From Mobula birostris (lineage: Eukaryota), in assembly GCF_030028105.1 (NCBI RefSeq), contig NC_092393.1, positions 37,363,248-37,427,247 on the forward strand: DNA of 64,000 bases, written 5' to 3'. The position numbers and the translations under genes were made by a program. Positions within the stretch are counted from its first letter, which is position 1; each line of letters starts with the position of its first letter. Below are positions 3,571 through 59,776 of the stretch, piece after piece. The notes beneath the pieces were generated by a model, which searched no databases, had not been told where the DNA came from, and saw only the letters and a list, made by a program, of their open reading frames with translations.

Positions 3571-4640
3571 TCTTCCACAAAACCTCCTTTTTGCAGTATT
3601 TTTCTTTCAAGTATCTAGCATCTGCAATTTTTATTAATTTTCATCTGGTTAATTAGTTTGAACAATTGCAAAGAAAAATGACAAGCTGCTTTTAGGCATA
3701 AAGAAACGAGAAATTGAACCTTTCAAAGGCAATTTTGGGCTATTCCTGTGTGCTTTCCAAATGTGGAGCTGAGGTCACAATATATAACTGATTTATTTAG
3801 GAACAGTGTAAGACTACAGTTAAATAAATCGATGGGTTCCAGCTGCACCCAAGGACTTCAACATGCATCCAGACATGCAGCTCAGTACAAATCCATAGAG
3901 TTTCTCAGAGGTTTCTCTTTTCATCTGTAGCCACAAAGATAGTTTCAACATTTGCCCTTTTTAAAGTTAAGAAATACAGATTGGAAATGCCTTTTTGATT
4001 ACTGTAGTTAATGTTCTATGAGAGAACATAATTTGCTGATTGGTTGGAAATTTAAAGAACTTTCCTTAAAGGGTTTTTTTGTCAAAGTAATGAAAAAAGG
4101 GTAAAGAAAAGGAGGGGAAGATAGGAAAGAAAGGCAGGTAGTTTATATTTTGTGCATCTCATGTAAGGGTGGATTTTATTTTTGGAGGAGCAATTTGTTG
4201 TTACGAAAGGATTATTAGATTTTCTGGTTTTTCAAGAGAGCTGTTTTTAAGACATGGATCCACCCTACTGATTCAAACACTGTTTCTTGGTGCTCGAGGC
4301 TGATGTGCACAAGCAGTATTGAGCAATTCCTGCATTGCTCCTTGACCAAGAGCCTTCAACCAGAAATGTTAACACTTTTTTTCTTTATTCACAGCTGTTG
4401 CCTGACCTGCTTAGGGGTTTCAGCACTTGTTGTTTCTGCTTGAGTTTTTTAGCATTTGTAGTACTTTTCGTAAGTTGTGGCCAAAAAAGATCCCCTGCTA
4501 TTTCAGTTTTGAAGAGGAGTTGGAGTTTTACCCGGTATCCTGACTTCTAGAAAGATCACAGGTCATATCTAATTTGAAATCTTTCATTTGGCACTCACAT
4601 GCCCATATGATAGTGATTTAATACAACACATGTTTATTAT

Positions 4641-4829: not shown

Positions 4830-4921
4830 CTTTTTTACTGACCACTGTTTCTCATACTGACCTGCTAACTTCTGCTGTTACAGTCTATCATCTGAGATTG
4901 TAAAAATTTCCATTGTGCTTT

Positions 4922-5190
4922 CCATAAGACCATAAGATATAGGAGCAGAAGTCAGCCATCCGGCCCATCGAGTCTGCTCTGCCATTCAATCATGGGCTGA
5001 TCCGATTCTTCCGGTCATCCCCACTCCCCTGCCTTCTCCCCATACCCTTTGATGCCCTGGCTAATCAAGAACCTATCTATCTCTGCCTTAAATACGCCCA
5101 GTGATTTGGCCTCCACAGCCACTCGTGGCAACAAATTCCACAGACTTACCACCCTCTGATTAAAGAAATTTCTCTGCATCTCAGTTCTAA
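4922..5190 (-). mobile_element. CR1 LINE 3' fragment
   Basis: ORF2 C-terminus [33 protein letters not shown], and a (TCTTATGG)n tail. Confidence 0.9.
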
Positions 5191-5237
5191 AAAGAAGTTC
5201 GATGCTGAAGTCGTGCTTTCTTTGCAGATCAGTCGGG

Positions 5238-5474
5238 ATGCCCAAACTGGAGGGGTTTGATTTCTGGAGGACAACGCTAAATGGTGCACGATACGTGGTT
5301 GCTCCAATGGTGGATCAGAGTGAGCTTGCATGGAGGTTGCTTAGTCGTCGCCATGGTGCCCATCTCTGTTACACACCCATGCTTCATGCTCAGGTGTTCG
5401 TGCGGGATGCAAATTACAGAAAGGAGAACCTGTACAATGAGACAAACGCAGAAGATCGACCACTCGTCGTTCAG
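5238..5474 (+). CDS. DUS1L: DUS1L coding exon 1 (exon begins 5228; ATG 5238): [10 protein letters not shown]...[45 protein letters not shown]...DRPLVVQ
   Basis: Translation closely matches the vertebrate DUS1L N-terminus (APMVDQSE motif). AG acceptor at 5226-5227, GT donor at 5475; 237 nt, phase 0. Confidence 0.97.
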
Positions 5475-5921
5475 GTATTGGGCTTAGAGCAATTATAACA
5501 GGAATAAAGCAAAACTATACCTCACTGACATTTGAACTTGACCTCTTCACACTCCTTCTATCGCTGAATTGTAACATCATTCTGTCTATTGATTTAATTT
5601 AAATACATTGAGCATATTAACAGAAAAATATGAACTAAAATGTTTATAATTTATTTAGCTTCAATAACCCAGTAACTATTTCCATTTAGTGTCCCATTTA
5701 CAATAACAAGAAGACTTCCCTGTGTTTCAGATGGATCACCCGAGTGTAGGTGAAATTGGGCAGATGGATTGCACATCTGTAATTGAACCTGTCTCAATGT
5801 AATCCTTTGTCCACTGCAGCTAGATCATCCAATATTCCTGGTTACTAAAAAACCTAGTGAAATATCAGTCTGATTGCATTACCTATTTTTAATATGTCTT
5901 ATTGTCTTTTTTTGTTTTAAG

Positions 5922-6030
5922 TTCTGTGCAAATGACCCAGAAGTGTTTGTCCAAGCCTGTTTGCTCGCTCAGGATTACTGCAATGCCATTGATCTCAACC
6001 TGGGTTGTCCACAGATGATTGCAAAACGAG
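5922..6030 (+). CDS. DUS1L: DUS1L coding exon 2: [36 protein letters not shown]
   Basis: Contains the Dus-family NxGCP catalytic cysteine motif; AG/GT flanks; 109 nt. Confidence 0.97.
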
Positions 6031-6385
6031 GTAGCTGAGGATTTTTTCTGTTTATCTGATGTACTAAACTGCACTAATGCTGACATGAAATTTAAAAAAA
6101 ACACCATTTTTTCAGCCAATTACATCATGGCATTTTGGTCATTAGAGTGGTGCAATGTATAAGAAATTTTTGGTTGAACTGTTAGCACTCTAGTGTGTAA
6201 AAATGGTCGGAATGTTACCAATGAGTCATTGACTATGTTTATATATTGTAAAATTTGTTTGAGGATCTGAAACAACACAAACTATAAATGTGAAAGAGTT
6301 AAATCCTAAAGGCCAAAAGCTTTGATAAGCATAAAATATGTTGAAGTACTAGCAATGCAGGAAGTAGTTTAGTCTTAATTTGCAT

Positions 6386-7320
6386 TTCTGGTCAAGATGG
6401 CACCAGTGAACAACGATTCCAAGGGGAACATCTTCCAGATAGTAAAACATTCCAATTATTTCACTCTTTCTACACCTTCTGCTTGTTCTTTTTGTCTTGC
6501 CTGTGTTATGGAAACTGTTGGAGCCTGTGATGTATAATTTGGAACTTGATCTCCTATGTCTGGAGAGTTGTCTTGTGGAGCTCAGAGACAGGGGGCCGAA
6601 AAGTTCCAAGACCACAAGCCGACTCGTGGAAAAGACTAGAGATGAGTTGCGGGGTCATGAATGACTCCATCCCAAAGCAGCGAGGAAGATTGAAGCATTG
6701 GGGTGAATGCGGAGGGGATCAGCAATGGCTTGGCTCAAGACAGTCGGCAGCCAGGTCAGCACGTTTGGACCCAGTTCGGCGTGTTTGGGCCTAGTTGGGC
6801 GCCGTTCAGCCCTGGATTGGCGGTGTTAGGACCCAGATCAGCAGTTACTCTTTAAGGATGGACTGCGTTTGTGTGGCTGCTCTCCTTGTATGCAACGAGA
6901 AAACGTTTCCCACATTCTGAGTTTTATGTAATTATTGGACTGTACTTTATGTTAGTTTCTTTCAGTTTTTCAGTGTTTTCTTTCGTGTGGCAGGTGGATG
7001 ATCTGTTAATTTTTTTGTGTGTTGGGGGGTTGAGGATTTGGTGCTACTGTCACTGTTCTTTACTGCAAGTGAGGTGGTCGGGAATTATTATGTGTTGAGG
7101 ATCATTGATTTTGTGGGGTTTTTTTGTTGCGGACAAGGGGGGTATTTTGGGGTCTGCAAATTTTGTTTCTTTTTCATGCCAGTTGAGGGGGGTGGAGTTG
7201 ATGTCTTTTCTTTCATCAACCCTCATGGTCTTTCTTTATTTAATGGCTATCTGGAGTAGACAAATATTGGAGTTGTATTATAAATGCATACTTTGAGAAT
7301 AAAATGAAACTTTGAACCTT
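6386..7320 (+). mobile_element. Non-autonomous retroelement starting TTCTGGTCAAGATGGCACC, with Rex1-like tail
   Basis: Same 5' end as the minus-strand element ending at 42778; ends AATAAA...TTTGAAC. Confidence 0.55.
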
Positions 7321-8778
7321 TTAATATTTTTATTTAAATATTGCATCTATGTTAATATCAGAACAACAGTTTTGGAAGTTTTTTTGTGCTTTTATAGACC
7401 GGGCAAGCAAACGTTAAATTGTTTATGAACATTGCCTGATTCTTCCTACTTCAGTCTTGAAACACTGTATTTATGCATGCATAGAACTAAAGATCTAATA
7501 GTATGGTGAGAGTGTAAATCAGCAAAAAGTCTGAATGTGAGCATGCTACATAGGGTTGGAGAATGGACACAAAGTTGATGAATGTTGTGATTATGATCTG
7601 ATTGGAATATGTGGTTTATTTTTACTAAGGTTTTTGGAACACTTGCCAATTGTCAAGTGAAAGCCTTTCATGCATTATATTCATTTAGTAACATCCATTT
7701 CTTGTTTTTGCTTCACTTAAAAAAATAGCAATTACAGAGTATGGAATACTTAGATTAAAATGGATTGTGATTATTTGTCTATCCCCTGGGATTGAGGTCC
7801 ATCTAATGAATGTTGTTGGGAATGCAGATAGTGGTGTACATACTGCATACCAAATAACATATATAATCAGAAGTGATCTAAATTCACATCTAAAAATAAT
7901 ATTGCACACAAAGTGCATGTTTTAATAGAAAAAAAGTCAGTCACTTCTGTAAATGAAGCTATATCTGAACTACAGTTTTGCACAACCAGTTGAATAGATC
8001 AACTGCAATTTAGTTCAAGTTTGAATAGCTAAGTCTTTCCTTGGAGTGCTAATCCTTTAGGAGAATGTAACTATTAGAAAATTAGTGCATGTTGGTGGGA
8101 TGTAAGTAGCATTTAATAAAATTGGGGAAATGTCATTGACTTACTGTAGTATTTATTGACGTTAAAACTGCCTTAAAATATCAAAAAAGAGAACTGACCT
8201 GTCTTGATTTTTTGCTTATGATCATTTATCTACTTCAATACATTTGGTATATGTTAGAGTGCAAAAAGAAAATAATTGAATTCAAGAAACTCTATGGTAA
8301 CACGAAGTTCATTTCCTCGGCATTAATCTCTCAAATATTTGGCAGTCTTCATATGAGCTTCCGTTTCTTTTCTTGATATATTTTCATAAAGCCAAAATCT
8401 ACAAAAGGATTAAAAGGATGTATTTTATATTTTTTGATCAGCAGCTAAGGTCTTTTCTACTGCGCTAAATCAAATGTGATCTTACTCAACTTAAAATATA
8501 CCATTAACTAATTGCTGTATAATTAGTGGAAATAATTAAAAGCCTGAACATAAATGAGATAATGAAGAGAATTTGCAGGTGACACATTTTATAAATTTAT
8601 ATTAATGTGTGGCGAATCCTCTAACATTCCACTTGGCTCTCAGCTGCTGCTGAGAACCACGCTCTTTAACAGAGACTGCAGAAACACTCATCCTTTTGAA
8701 ATAATACCTCTCTTTTAATCAGCAAGGTATTTTGCGGGGTATATGACAATAAATGTATGTGTTTGCTCTTGTTTATAG

Positions 8779-23009: not shown

Positions 23010-23945
23010 TGTTCAAGTTCAAGTTTATTGCTGTTCAACTGTACACATGTCTATAGCCAAATGAAACAACTTACCTCTGGGATCAAGGTACAAAACACAG
23101 TACGTATATCCCATGCAACACACGCAGATGCTGGAGTAACTCAGCAGGTCAGGTGGCATCTATGGAAGTGAATAAACAGTTGATGTTTCAGGCCAAGACC
23201 CTTATTCAGGACATAAAAAATATTAACATAATAATATTAACATAATAAAAATTCTCTGGATGTACAAGTTGACATCAGGTGTATGTACAACATATAGTTA
23301 AACATACAACACTATAGCTACTGGTGGTAGGGTGTTCAGAAGTCTCACAACCTGGGTGAAGAGACTATTATCCAGCTTAACACAGTTCTTGTTCTTATAC
23401 TGCAGTATCTTCTGCTTGACAGTGAGAGATTGTGGGATGGATGAGAGGAGTCCTTGACAAAGCTGAGGGCTCTGCAAACACAGTGCTCCTAGTAAGTGTC
23501 CTGGGATGGGTTGGAGGGAAGATAGAGACCCAGATAATTCTCATAGCAGCCCTCACAGTCTGTTGCAGAGTTTTGCAGTCAGATGCCTTACAAATCCCAT
23601 ACCAGACAGGGATACAGCTGGTCAGGGTAATCTCGATGGTGCTCCAGTAGAATGTGATTAGAATGAGGGGGGCAGGGAGCTTCGCTCACCTCAGTCTCCT
23701 CAGGAAGTGGAGGCACTGCTGTGCTTTCTTGAGTGAAGATCATCTGTGATGTGCGCCCCAAGAAACCTGGTTCTCCTAACTCTCTCCACGGAGGAGCTGT
23801 TGAAATGCAGTACAGAATGGTTAGCTTGCACCTTCGTGAAGTCCACATTTTGTCCACATTGAAACCCAAGGTGTTAAGTTTGCGCGTCCACAAACCGCTT
23901 GACCACTTCTCTGTAACTTCGCTGCAACTCATCGTTGTTGCTGAT
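23010..23945 (-). mobile_element. Rex1-like LINE fragment interrupted by a PLE tail (about 23115-23212)
   Basis: TTGAAC tail and decayed RT C-terminal region. The inserted PLE tail reads CTGAATAAGGGTCTTGGCCTGAAACATC on the minus strand. Confidence 0.7.
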
Positions 23946-24217
23946 GAGCAAAAGTTAATATCTTTAATTGCTGAGTTCAGCGTAAGACTTGGCCAGCATT
24001 TGGCTTAAAGTAGACTCCAAGTTAAGATCCAATAATTTTCTTTCAATATTACGGTGATTAACAGATCCATCAGAATAGAGTCAGCACTAAAATTTTAGTC
24101 ATAATTAATTGTTCCAATACTGTGAAGGAGTTGCTTACAGTCGAGGAACATTATTTGCTGAAAGGAACATAGAAGGTGTACACAGCCTATGATTTACATA
24201 CTTATCATACTTTACAT

Positions 24218-24430
24218 GCCGATGCGGCAGAGAGGGCCTCAAGATGGCTGTGGCTCAAAAGAGGGGAGCCATGGAGTCATAAGTAGCTAGCCATCTGGAC
24301 ACAAGCTGGGGTCTGATCAGCCCCGGCTGGGTCACCTGGAGGAGGTTGTATGATGTTGAAAGACCCGAAACACCTGATGATTCCAGGAACATCACTGAAG
24401 ATGTGTCCAGAAGCATCAGTGGATGTATGT
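24218..24430 (+). mobile_element. 3' end of a HERO-like (restriction-like-endonuclease) non-LTR retrotransposon
   Basis: In-frame ADAAERASRWLWLKRGEPWSHK* (24218-24286) resembles the C-terminus I recall for HERO-clade ORFs; followed by a structured 3' UTR. Confidence 0.65.
24294..24411 (+). ncRNA. Putative permuted hammerhead-ribozyme-like structured RNA
   Basis: CTGAAGA at 24395-24401, GAAAC at 24367-24371, GTA at 24348-24350, with six complementary helices (see findings). Confidence 0.55.
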
Positions 24431-25285
24431 ACACAGCAATATATACTTAAATTGTATTCAATATTAATACACTTGAAGATTATTATCTATTTATGTAGCA
24501 CCTTTCATGCCCTTTTCAGCAAATCCTAACATGCTTTACAGCTTTTCCCAATGCTGTCTCTGTTTAATGAGGCAGACATTGGAACCAATTTACATACTGT
24601 AAGCTTCTATAAACAGAAATGGAATAATGAATCAGTGTTTTTGTGGAGACACAGGACGCTGGAAATGCTGTAATCTAGCACAAAATTCAGACTGCTGGAG
24701 GAACCCAAGGCAGAGAGTATATAGATGGGAGATTGCCAGTATTAAGAGGAAGGGACGAGGCAGAGACTGGCTGGTGATAGGTGGTGTATTTTTCTTAAAT
24801 GCTAGTGCTTACTAATGATTTTTGCAAACTTCGGTCATGAAGCAGAACTTCCATCTCCCAATTAACTGAAGTGTTTAAATTCATCATTCCTTGCAGAAGT
24901 ATAGTAAATTTTAACAGATGTGAAATAATCATAGTTGAATTACTTGGATATTATCAAAGCTAACATAATAGCTACATTTAAAAAAGAAGTTCCCAATTGT
25001 TCAAAATGAGAGCTAAACACCTTATTTTTTTACTTAATGTAAATATTTAGTTGCAATTTAAAAAAAAAATAAAATACAGATTTTCTTGGCAGTAGATGTT
25101 GTGAAACTGGAGAGGGTGCCAAGGAGATTTACTGGGATGTTGCCTGGGACAGAGAAGTTTAGTTAAAAAGAGAAATTAGATCTGTTCTCTCTGGGACAGA
25201 GGAAGTTAAGGGACCTGATGGAGATACAGTATATAAAATTATGAGGGGTGTATATCAGGTATAACGCAGGAAGTATTCCCCTTAT

Positions 25286-55083: not shown

Positions 55084-55854
55084 CCGAGATACATCAGAAT
55101 GGATAAAAAGGGAAAATGAAAGAAATCCGAGACAATTAAACTGAGCTGAGAAAGATGTTTTTTGCCATTAAACTGCACAGGTACAGATGACTTTATTTAT
55201 AAGGTAGATGGAGAACTTGTATCCTGTCAGTAAGAGACTGCCATATGAGTCTAGCTCCTTCAAATGTGCTTATGAAGAATAATGTAAAGCCATTAGTTTT
55301 GCTCAGCATTTGGCATGATGTCCTCCATCATCCACTTCTTGCTTATTACTTACAGATGACAAAATTACAGTGCATGCAGTAAGTTTCAATTATATTGAAA
55401 TCTCTGCTGGGGCAAAATAAAAGAATAGCTAATATGTCACGTAAAAATACTTACAGTATTTCTATTGGCAATCCATGTAACTCTACTGTTGTTGTCTGTC
55501 CTCATTTTCTGCCCATGACTGCCTTTAAGACTACTGTTTGGCAAGCAGGCTCTCACTCATTTGATTTGTTTCTCAAAATACTGTAAGCTCTAGTCTATAT
55601 AAGTGAATATAACACCCAGGAATTCTGTAAACCTGCTACGGATAAATGATTTACAGCCCTTTCATTTGTCGTAAATCATGAGACAAATGGAATAGGTCTC
55701 ACAAGCTATTTAGTAAAAACTTGCTAATGAAGTTAGTCTCCCTAACAGTTTGAAAGTAACATCCAGAATAATTTGTGAAGGTAAATCAGTTCTCTTTAAG
55801 GCCGTGTCAGAAAATGAAAGAAATAAATATGCATTTGTTATAATATCTTTCCCA

Positions 55855-55995
55855 ATCTCTCCACTTTCTGCAGGGATCTCAGGGATCTGTGATTATCTTA
55901 TCCATTCATCCCTCCCCACTAATTTCCCCCCTGGCACATACCCCTGCAAGCGACAGCAATGCTACACCTGCCTATTCATATCCTCCTTTACCTTC
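55855..55995 (+). mobile_element. PLE linker fragment (PGTYPCKRQQCYTC)
   Basis: Homologous to YPCKRKCYTCPY at about 59030. Confidence 0.65.
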
Positions 55996-56129
55996 TGCTG
56001 TGGCTGTTGGTGCACGGACCTTGGTAGATACCAGATCTGTTTTCAATCAATCCCATCTCGAGCAACAGTAATAAAGGTAGAATTTTTTTACAGAGGTCTA
56101 TGTGGTTTAACTTCACAGTACTTAGCTGG

Positions 56130-56690
56130 TAGGGGTGTATGGGGTGTCAGGGAGGGGTAGCACCTCCGGTGATGGAACATGTCGTGTCCTTTTCAAGGCA
56201 GTTAGTCCACCTTTGGTCCCCACCTGGCACTCAGCTCTCACCTGTGGCTCCCCGTAGCTGTTTGCATGCGACAGCGGCCACACCCTGGGCAACGGCTTCG
56301 ACAAGCCAGCTAAACCAGGTGAGGGTAGCCGACAGGTCTCAAACCCTCGGTGAGATAGGGAGTTGTCTATCCCAGCATGTGAAGACAGACTCCGGCAGAT
56401 TGAGCGGACGAGACCAATGGAAGATCCAACGGTCAAGAAGGCGGTCTCTGCAAGCGTCGTGGAACATGTAGAGCAGGACAAGACACAGAAGAAGCCCTGG
56501 TCATCCACTGCACCTAGTCCCATCTCCAGCCGTCTCGACTCTGTCTTGCCACTGGATCCAGATGGGAATTGGGAAGAGAGAGTGAGGCTGACACTGTGCA
56601 ACTCTTCCTCACTTGAATCCAAGTCACGCACTAGACTCAACACCATAATGGTGTCGAGGTCCTCATCGACGTTGGCGATGGACAAACACA
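56130..56690 (+). mobile_element. 561-bp non-coding retroelement (probably an RTE-derived internally deleted element) with 7-bp TSD
   Basis: TAGCTGG at 56123-56129 and 56691-56697; CpG-rich; no Pol III boxes or TIRs seen. The RTE affiliation is recalled similarity, not verified. Confidence 0.7.
56132..56325 (+). ncRNA. Putative HDV-like ribozyme at the element 5' end
   Basis: P1, P1.1, P2, P3, P4 and J4/2 GCTAA can all be assigned in canonical order (see findings). Confidence 0.6.
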
Positions 56691-58988: not shown

Positions 58989-59776
58989 AAGCAACTGGGA
59001 GCACTGGATGCAATAGATGACACCAGCTTATCCCTGTAAGCGTAAGTGCTACACCTGTCCCTACACCTCATCTCTTGCAACCATTCAGGGCCCCAAACAG
59101 TCCTTCCAGGTGAGACAACACTTCACTTGTGAGTCTGTTGGAGTCATCTATTGCATTCGGTGCCCCTGGTGCGGCCTCCTCTACATCGGTGAAACCCAAC
59201 ACAGATTGGGGGACCACTTTGTCAAGCACCTCCACTCTGTCTGCCACAACAGACAGGATCTCCCGGTAGCCACCCACTTCAACTCTGCTTCCCATTCCCA
59301 TTCAGATATGTCCATACATGGCCTCCTCTACTGCCATGATGAGGCTAAACGCAGGTTGGAGGAGCAACACCTCATATACCGTCTTGGTAGTCTCCAGCCC
59401 CTTGGTATGAACATAGAATTCTCCAACTTCCGGTAATTCCCTCCCCCTCACTTCCTCTATCCCTATTTCACTCTGCCCCCTCCCCCAGCTCCCTCATGGT
59501 TCCGCCTCCTTCTTCTACCACCCATTGTTTTCAGGGCTATGACGTCAATGCTTCCCCTCCCCCACCCCTTTGCCTTTCAAATTACTGGTCTTTCAACTGA
59601 CGCTACAAGCATTCTTCAAATCCTTCCCCATCTTTCATTCTTCAGCCCTGACGAAGGGTTCCGGCCCGAAACGTCGACTCATCGTTTCTGACTGATGCTG
59701 CCCGACCTGCTTATTTCATCCAGCGTACTGAAAGTGTTGCTTTGACCTCTTACAGCATCTGCAGATTATTTTGTGT
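58989..59776 (+). mobile_element. 5'-truncated Penelope-like element with open GIY-YIG endonuclease frame (about 59026-59436) and hammerhead tail
   Basis: GVIYCIRCPWCGLLYIGET..RL..H...HFN..H...RRLEEQ.LI..L.SLQP.GMN; long TSD. Confidence 0.92.
59643..59680 (+). ncRNA. Minimal type I hammerhead ribozyme of PLE
   Basis: CTGACGA (59648-59654), A, GGGT-TCCG-GCCC, GAAA (59668-59671), CGTC; stem I partly decayed. Confidence 0.75.

Follow-up and report, generated by a model that had tools for sequence, protein, structure and literature searches.

The window analysed in this study, a stretch of 64,000 nt from Mobula birostris (assembly GCF_030028105.1, contig NC_092393.1, positions 37,363,248 to 37,427,247 of the forward strand), contains at 24219-24437 a dead, recent, 5′-truncated retro-copy of the 3′ end of a long interspersed nuclear element (LINE) that is assigned to the R2 superfamily by its protein. 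Coordinates are positions in the window and refer to the + strand unless stated otherwise. Within the 3′ untranslated region (3′ UTR) of this element of the restriction-enzyme-like endonuclease (RLE) type, a complete hammerhead ribozyme core is found in the order NUH, GAAA, CUGANGA, which is not a permutation of types I-III. The core and its strand order had been pointed out in a preliminary description of the window, and all the strings it listed do lie on the + strand: GTA at 24348-350, TGATGTT at 24351-357 opposite AACATCA at 24388-394, GAAA at 24367-370 and CTGAAGA at 24395-401.

The limits of the insertion were obtained from the contigs of four runs, representing four coded organisms, which were aligned to the window, depth being the summed contig depth and not a copy number. 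This depth is 3-11 outside 24219-24437 and 3x10^4 to 6x10^5 inside, and the repeated part of the region, which marks a very abundant element, is 24219-24437 only. In runs X9 and X10 the orthologous site is empty, with 24206 or 24204 joined to 24438 and 2 or 4 other letters between them, and the insertion is common to run X5 and the window. The interval is recognised as a recent 5′-truncated retro-insertion because the repeat is limited to it, the site is empty in X9 and X10, and X5 shares the insertion. Seen across the organisms compared, the insertion (24204-24438) is missing in two of the four and present in the other two, with flanks that differ by about 2-4%, which indicates that the LINE family was active recently. 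A second copy of the element was not found within the window. In a wider sample, 35-88% of the words sampled from 24100-24520 occur in runs from at least eight coded organisms, and 12-21% in six runs recorded as RNA. The parts of the insertion outside the folded region are the following.

24207-24218, +: junction filler on the 5′ side, not present in the empty orthologous site; the similarity of family copies to the window stops upstream of 24219.
24219-24286, +: last 22 codons of the LINE open reading frame (ORF), ending in DAAERASRWLWLKRGEPWSHK, and its TAG stop; repeat depth starts at 24219, the 5′-truncation point, and the C-terminus matches other copies.
24427-24437, +: 3′ tail without poly(A); the flanks of other copies diverge without consensus behind 24436-24438, and the empty-site joint resumes at 24438.

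The element thus ends at 24437, without poly(A). The in-frame stop TAG lies at 24284-286, and the fold described below begins 8 nt after it, at 24294, as first reported. The ORF then drawn upstream of the fold stands for 24219-24286, which derive from the element, while its residues farther upstream belong to unique flank according to the repeat depth. The same C-terminus closes an intact ORF of 1110 aa in one metagenomic copy (L001) as well as two protein fragments (P0001 and P0002).

Homologous copies were collected with a search pattern of 20 letters taken from 24389-24408, one of them N, which gave 23 matches in 22 metagenome contigs. Six matches without other similarity were dropped as chance (L003, L006, L007, L011, L016 and L018), and two as stubs truncated within the fold (L004 and L013). 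The remaining 15 homologous copies, five of them cut by contig ends, and the window make up an alignment of 16 rows, which was built by MAFFT from sequence only and was not fitted to any structure. The pattern itself fixed six CUGANGA letters, the strand of stem I at 24389-394 and the 3′ side of inner helix A, and this limits what can be learned from those columns. Further searches added little to the collection. With the 37-aa ORF tail, only the two short C-terminal fragments P0001 and P0002 were found among the representatives. An 18-mer designed from the 5′ parts of the core (blocks S and G, see below), and hence free of CUGANGA bias, hit 41 bacterial or chance loci in genome contigs and 3 in viral contigs, none of them homologous; viral contigs matched neither the 20-letter pattern nor the L001 ORF. 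A covariance model of the fold found nothing beyond the 18 places already known in the window and 16 loci.

Two of the 15 copies sit behind intact ORFs, of 1110 aa in L001 and 1085 aa in L008. These ORFs are 67% identical to each other, carry RVT_1 and zf-RVT domains, and have R2 proteins as nearest solved relatives (E = 3e-27). The C-terminal stretch contains RPD...ELTVPWE...KY, which we take to be the C-terminal restriction-enzyme-like endonuclease motif. Because of the two domains, the R2 proteins as nearest solved relatives, the truncated copies and the empty site, the LINE is placed, on sequence criteria, in the R2 superfamily (RLE type). It looks Hero/Rex6-like, where the R2-superfamily rank is the one demonstrated and the clade label comes from likeness. 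Its relatives in the databases (389 related proteins) are unnamed fish proteins, together with proteins of amphioxus (62% identity) and scallop (48%), and they bear only the names "uncharacterized protein", "reverse transcriptase" or "polyprotein". The ORF of L001 (328-3660, - strand) is 97% identical to a protein of Limanda limanda, 93% to one of Entelurus aequoreus, 89% to one of Conger conger and 86% to one of Clarias gariepinus. These species belong to different fish orders, and identities of 86-97% across them suggest horizontal transfer of the LINE among fishes. On the - strand of L008, about 235 nt separate the end of the 3′ UTR fold of one copy (8327-8440) from the ATG of a full-length copy that follows on the same strand (ORF 4837-8094), so that this pair may be arranged head-to-tail. 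The L001 contig begins with a 12-letter string (3748-3759, - strand) which is presumably the end of a sequencing adapter, and its first bases may not be genomic.

The fold predicted for the sense strand of the 3′ UTR comprises stems I, II and III, the core and four further helices (A, B, E and F), with core positions numbered in the usual hammerhead manner. Its parts are listed here from 5′ to 3′.

24294-24303, +: helix A, 5′ strand (TCTGGACACA), 10 bp with 24402-24411.
24304-24328, +: hairpin B, 8 bp between AGCTGGGG (24304-311) and CCCCGGCT (24321-328), with a 9-nt loop containing the palindrome UGAUCA.
24329-24333, +: stem II, 10.x strand GGGUC, pairing with 24362-24366; G24329 is G10.1.
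24335-24340, +: helix E, strand adjoining stem II (CCTGGA), pairing with 24382-24387 and bridging the far ends of stems I and II.
24344-24349, +: stem III, 16.x strand, ending in U16.1 (24349) and pairing with 24370-24375.
24350, +: H17, with the predicted scissile bond 24350|24351; of 15 rows, 5 have A and 10 have C, while G and U are absent.
24351-24357, +: stem I, 1.x strand UGAUGUU, pairing with 24388-24394.
24358-24361, +: GNRA-like linker of 4 nt from stem I to stem II, reading GAAA, GUGA, GAGA or GUAA across copies.
24362-24366, +: stem II, 11.x strand GACCC; C24366 is C11.1.
24367-24370, +: core G12, A13 and A14, and A15.1; G12 in 15 of 16 rows, A13, A14 and A15.1 in 16 of 16.
24370-24375, +: stem III, 15.x strand ACACCU; the family has C at 24375.
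24382-24387, +: helix E, strand adjoining stem I (TCCAGG), pairing with 24335-24340.
24388-24394, +: stem I, 2.x strand AACAUCA, of which 24389-24394 lie within the search pattern.
24395-24401, +: core C3, U4, G5, A6, N7, G8 and A9 (CUGAAGA); N7 is A in 4, U in 8, G in 2 and C in 2 rows.
24402-24411, +: helix A, 3′ strand (TGTGTCCAGA), pairing with 24294-24303.
24413-24426, +: hairpin F, 5 bp (24413-417 with 24422-426) and a 4-nt loop.

This fold fills the 3′ UTR of about 150 nt to within 26 nt of the element end. Its position relative to the ORF varies, since it begins either 8 nt downstream of the stop or within the ORF, sharing the last 8 codons with it, and in five of eight copies the stop is a UGA in the loop of hairpin B. 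In the copy of the window the core letters are intact, and stem III carries a U-C mismatch (24346:24373) and a G-U pair (24344:24375). This copy is a fossil without promoter or ORF, inactive in place and informative only as a member of its family.

The seven helices (A, B, II, E, III, I and F) were tested on the alignment as 47 pairs and 622 cells. Of these cells, 92.1% are paired, against 30-43% when the partners are slid by 1-3 columns. Both sides change at 14 of the 47 pairs, namely at 4 in helix E, 3 each in A and B, 2 in III, 1 each in F and II, and none in I. On four of five measures, none of 500 shuffles matched the observed values; on the fifth, which counts further standard pair types, the alignment scores 28 against a mean of 31.5 in the shuffles, 497 of which reach 28. 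Judging from the G-U pairs, the fold belongs to the sense strand, and the junctions are all flush, with no indels in any row.

At the level of single helices, the three outer pairs of helix A change on both sides (CG/UA, CG/UA and UA/GC), and its inner seven pairs are invariant, their 3′ side being fixed by the pattern. Hairpin B is paired in 92% of cells, with three pairs changing on both sides. In helix E such changes affect four of the six pairs (UA/CG and three times GC/AU). The pair 24347:24372 of stem III is UA in 9, GC in 4 and CG in 3 rows, and 24346:24373 is GC in 10, AU in 2 and GU in 1, while the pair 24416:24423 of hairpin F is UA in 9, CG in 5 and UG in 1. RNAalifold recovers stem III and hairpin F unaided. 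The additional helix 24335-340/24382-387 and the outer helices, already seen in the single sequence of the window, are real and covary in the alignment. Stem III had at first been drawn with a bulged T; in the family it is a contiguous helix of 6 bp (24344-349/24370-375), and this version replaces the earlier one.

The contigs aligned to the window offer a view independent of the search pattern. In the four species, 14 positions of the fold vary with a share of at least 5%. Four of them are unpaired, one is H17 (A>C), six keep or restore a pair, one is a CpG transition at G12, and two break a pair. Relative to the window copy, stem III is restored by T>G at 24346 and by T>C at 24375, the latter found in 81-96% of the contig depth, depending on the run.

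Two further structures within the fold could form. The UGAUCA of the hairpin B loop (24312-24320) is kept in 8 of 11 rows, and since the hexamer is self-complementary, these loops may form a kissing-loop dimer. Stem I and inner helix A have a competitor in an alternative hairpin, which pairs 24389-393 with 24400-404 and is lengthened by 24386-387 with 24407-408; it is invariant, in letters fixed by the pattern, and may represent an inactive conformer, a candidate off-state.

As regards the core, the conservation of GAAA and NUH that could be expected of a true hammerhead is present among the homologs. Besides the counts for G12 to A15.1 listed above, U16.1 and G16.2 are found in 15 of 15 rows and C15.2 in 15 of 16, and the A15.1-U16.1 pair is UA in 15 of 15. 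At the base of stem II, 12 of 13 rows have G10.1 and 15 of 16 have C11.1, and their pair, G24329-C24366, is GC in 11 of 13, GU in one and another combination in one. H17, which alone separates stems III and I, is restricted to A or C; A>C, seen in four species, is its only variant with a share of at least 5%, and no indel occurs there. CUGANGA is found in all 16 rows, but six of its seven letters are fixed by the search pattern. For the contigs, which are independent of the pattern, no variant of at least 5% is listed in 24388-24411, and a large divergent subfamily, which departs after 24387, reads CUGAUGA. G24367>A, at 4-27%, and C24366>T both lie at a CpG, which fits decay after insertion. 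The other GAAA, at 24358-361, was ruled out as the core GAAA, as it varies (GUGA, GAGA, GUAA) across copies.

Taken by itself, the single window copy is not beyond what chance can produce, and it is the conservation and covariation across homologs that are. A scan for the strand order with a stem I of at least 7 bp found only the site at 24294-24411 on both strands of the window. Under stricter terms (stem I of at least 7 bp, contiguous stem III of at least 3 bp and stem II of at least 5 bp) the match was again the sole one in the window, yet at least one site occurred in 6 of 100 dinucleotide shuffles. The minimum free energy (MFE) fold has z = -1.5 on the + and -1.7 on the - strand. Of three inner helices offered by the MFE fold, two lose their pairing across the majority of rows and the third owes its invariance to the search pattern, so all three were set aside. 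These values would suit a motif arisen by chance in unconstrained repeat DNA, with no structure behind it. Such an explanation is next to impossible, since it is refuted by the alignment and its covariation: 14 pairs covary, 92% of cells are paired against 30-43% with slid partners, and intact ORFs with no more than 67% identity to each other are both followed by the fold.

A more elaborate version of this doubt is that the conserved structure consists of the nested helices (A, B, E, III and F) and nothing else, that stems I and II are absent, and that the match to CUGANGA, GAAA and UH is a coincidence. Strong covariation is indeed confined to the nested helices. Covariation among homologs, proposed at the outset as a check, is found for A, B, E, III and F; in stem II, which is paired in 95% of cells, the sole double change comes from an aberrant copy (L005); and in stem I there is none, because the partner strand is fixed by the pattern. 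The first four pairs of stem I are kept in 15/15 to 16/16 rows, the fifth in 12/16, the sixth in 14/15 and the seventh in 5/15, with 85% of its cells paired. The occurrence of the single-sequence match in 6 of 100 shuffled windows points the same way, as does the result from Rfam, where 23800-24900 gave no hammerhead match at E up to 10 and just two weak snoRNA-like chance matches outside the target. However, the Rfam models cannot represent the crossing order. The strands that would have to be single are complementary just as stems I and II need, with the shares of paired cells given above, and they abut the core without a spare nucleotide in any copy. G10.1-C11.1, A15.1-U16.1 and C15.2-G16.2 stand at hammerhead places, and N7 is the sole core position that varies freely. 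The layout of linker and bridging helix also repeats that of proven type-SGC ribozymes, as far as the part of the paper at hand describes them (PMC10085705). The coincidence is very improbable, and a hammerhead-shaped core very probably forms.

In regard to its topology, the closest known relative is found among rearranged hammerheads. Eckert, Friedrich, Weinberg and Weinberg (NAR 2023) divide the hammerhead into blocks S, G and C and distinguish six block orders, the blocks being assumed unbreakable (PMC10085705). In the sections of that paper available to us, type SGC, with the HRIMA-1 motif and its variants, has, besides stems I-III, a fourth helix by which the other sides of stems I and II are connected, and its stem I passes into stem II through a linker of about 3 nt; its ribozymes cleave in vitro and are found in metatranscriptome RNAs alongside hairpin ribozymes (PMC10085705). 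The order S (24344-357), G (24362-375), C (24388-401) in the fish LINE is the type-SGC order, laid out as S, a GNRA-like linker of 4 nt, G, 6 nt, a helix E strand, a stem I strand and CUGANGA. By the same partial account, both share the sequence from cleavage site to GAAA to CUGANGA, stems I-III with a fourth helix, the same core nucleotides, a short linker by which stem I passes into stem II (4 nt in the fish LINE, typically 3 in SGC) and a near-invariant stem I of about 5 bp. In type SGC, a stem II strand follows directly after CUGANGA, whereas in the fish LINE the strand in that place, 24402-411, pairs with 24294-303 instead of with GACCC. The stem II strand 24329-333 and one strand of helix E lie 5′ of S in the fish LINE, and 3′ of CUGANGA in SGC. 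The hosts differ as well, metatranscriptome RNAs with proven cleavage on one side and a vertebrate LINE 3′ UTR, known from sequence alone, on the other.

Since CUGANGA is not directly followed by its stem II strand, the fold is not type SGC proper, and it is none of the six block orders. Set apart from type SGC by the text description of the latter, it is best described, at the sequence level, as an SGC ring opened between A9 and G10.1, that is, inside block C. G10.1 does not covalently adjoin A9. The question of whether published rearranged hammerheads are of the same family, left open in the preliminary description, can be answered: those hammerheads are the type-SGC ribozymes, with which the fold has ring order and four helices in common, and its opening between A9 and G10.1 falls outside their block scheme (PMC10085705, as far as available). 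The view that stem II is replaced by a multi-helix junction is not supported; GGGUC/GACCC is stem II itself, with G10.1-C11.1, and helices A and B are an insertion. Helices A, B and II leave no unpaired nucleotide at 303|304, 328|329, 366|367 and 401|402, which makes a perfect four-way junction. Stem II would stack on the core as usual, and helix A on hairpin B.

Hammerheads of types I-III have the same core letters, G10.1-C11.1, A15.1-U16.1 and GUC or GUA triplets, and are also carried by multicopy retroelements. In contrast to them, the fish fold is a mirror ring with two crossing helices from which no circular permutation yields types I-III, and Rfam hammerhead models fail on it. Roles have been ascribed to the hammerheads of Penelope-like elements and retrozymes; unlike in those elements, the site predicted here lies inside a LINE 3′ UTR and not in terminal repeats.

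The explanation we favour, with a probability of roughly 0.6, is that the 3′ UTR from which the retro-copy derives is a pseudoknotted hammerhead, namely the SGC ring opened at A9/G10.1, which would be both self-cleaving and recognised by the reverse transcriptase. The sense strand would fold into stems I, II and III with the core CUGANGA, GAA and H17, helix E would tie stems I and II together, and the gap between A9 and G10.1 would be bridged by helix A and hairpin B in a four-way junction. RNA of an active element would then cleave itself between 24350 and 24351, with about 27 bp (helices A, II, E and III) holding both products together. The same fold, together with hairpin F and the tail, would be recognised by the reverse transcriptase of the element to start target-primed reverse transcription. 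It is accordingly expected, with the same reserve, that natural intact copies probably cleave in vitro.

Several observations weigh against this explanation. Cleavage is a prediction from sequence, the run data being contigs. The rows of the alignment are related subfamilies, so that the covariation counts are not independent events, and the crossing stems I and II, which define a hammerhead, are the least supported helices (no double change in I and one in II). The six pattern-fixed letters of CUGANGA are uninformative in the alignment, and the contigs aligned to the window are the sole unbiased view of them. For the chain break between A9 and G10.1 we know of no tested precedent. An efficient cut would detach the ORF from the 3′ end that reverse transcription requires, and all 15 rows covering the S block are cleanly joined across the site; no pile-up of copies starting at 24351 was found among the loose ends listed. 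The element runs on for 87 nt beyond the cut site, to its end at 24437, which speaks against a simple processing role, and the suggestion of a ribozyme for 3′-end processing was for this reason, and because of the 15 joined rows without an indel, abandoned. Because the cut is internal, the copies are joined across it and no excess starts at 24351 among the ends listed, cleavage, if real, must be slow, reversible or regulated.

The same observations could be explained by a hammerhead-shaped fold that is real and serves only as a handle by which the reverse transcriptase takes hold of the RNA for target-primed reverse transcription, with cleavage absent, suppressed or incidental. A protein-binding fold derived from a hammerhead had been one of the two readings offered in the preliminary description. 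The fold occupies nearly the whole 3′ UTR of an RLE LINE, and in related elements the R2 protein binds a pseudoknotted 3′ UTR, according to the available part of the source (PMC12222951). The 15 joined rows were copied from templates uncut at 24350|24351, a cut there is of no use for making the 3′ end of the element, and the invariant competing hairpin 24389-393/24400-404 could hold the core off. Furthermore, the ORF runs into helix A and hairpin B in five of eight copies, which ties the fold to the end of translation, where new protein could seize the RNA. Against a mere handle, the catalytic residues (G12, H17 other than G, A13 and A14) are kept across subfamilies whose ORFs are 67% identical, while N7 is free. 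A core with C17 or A17 would also be expected to cleave in the presence of Mg2+, as follows from established hammerhead biochemistry and from the accessible text of PMC10085705. On balance, a role confined to the handle is possible without being probable.

Going further than the self-cleaving fold favoured above, the LINE could use the cut of an active hammerhead of new topology in its life cycle. The RNA would be nicked 87 nt from its 3′ end, and the 3′ module bound by the reverse transcriptase would be released, religated or exchanged between RNAs. Copies in head-to-tail order, such as the L008 pair, would give rise to unit-length RNAs with 5′-OH and cyclic-phosphate ends, which could be circularised, and circularisation of unit-length RNA has been proposed for retrozymes. 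The shared SGC ring would then link a vertebrate LINE to viroid-like RNAs with SGC hammerheads. Such a use of the cut is doubtful.

Ribozymes of another class are known from related elements. HDV-like ribozymes (named after hepatitis delta virus) occupy the 5′ ends of several LINEs, R2 among them, and by cleaving there they release the RNA of the element from a co-transcript. They are likewise a double-pseudoknotted self-cleaving class on RLE-type LINEs, and they differ from the fish fold in class and in their 5′ placement, as the fish site is internal and 3′ of the ORF. Literature searches, with subscription-only papers and supplements outside their reach, found no paper describing a ribozyme in Hero or Rex6 elements. 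As for the 3′ end, the R2 protein binds the pseudoknotted R2 3′ UTR for target-primed reverse transcription, as described in the part of the paper available (PMC12222951). To the extent of that description, both 3′ UTRs are structured, pseudoknotted, without poly(A) and situated at the end of an RLE-type LINE, with the R2 protein as nearest solved relative. On the other hand, no hammerhead core is known to us in the R2 3′ UTR, from literature searches and what this source makes available, and protein binding of the fish fold would be expected by analogy.

Other features of the window stand apart from the fold. Short ORFs on the - strand at 23298-23932 presumably resemble the C-terminal part of the reverse-transcriptase protein of another LINE. 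An ORF of 139 aa at 59017-59436 (+), with a similar fragment at 55750-56160, presumably resembles the end of a Penelope-like element, with its zinc finger and GIY-YIG endonuclease.

If the fold cleaves, animal genomes would gain their first non-circularly permuted hammerhead, on a LINE whose summed contig depth exceeds that of the single-copy flanks about 10^4-fold in at least four related species. It would also be the first case of a chain break inside the block of CUGANGA and stem II, and would show that the core can accommodate a junction at A9/G10.1 and that real members escape motif searches which treat the three blocks as unbreakable. A self-cleaving ribozyme would then reside within the very 3′ UTR that an R2-like reverse transcriptase needs as its template end. 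How cutting of the RNA is reconciled with target-primed reverse transcription would thereby become testable, a matter relevant to the engineering of R2-type elements. If the fold does not cleave, it would be a clear case of a ribozyme fold retained as a protein handle.

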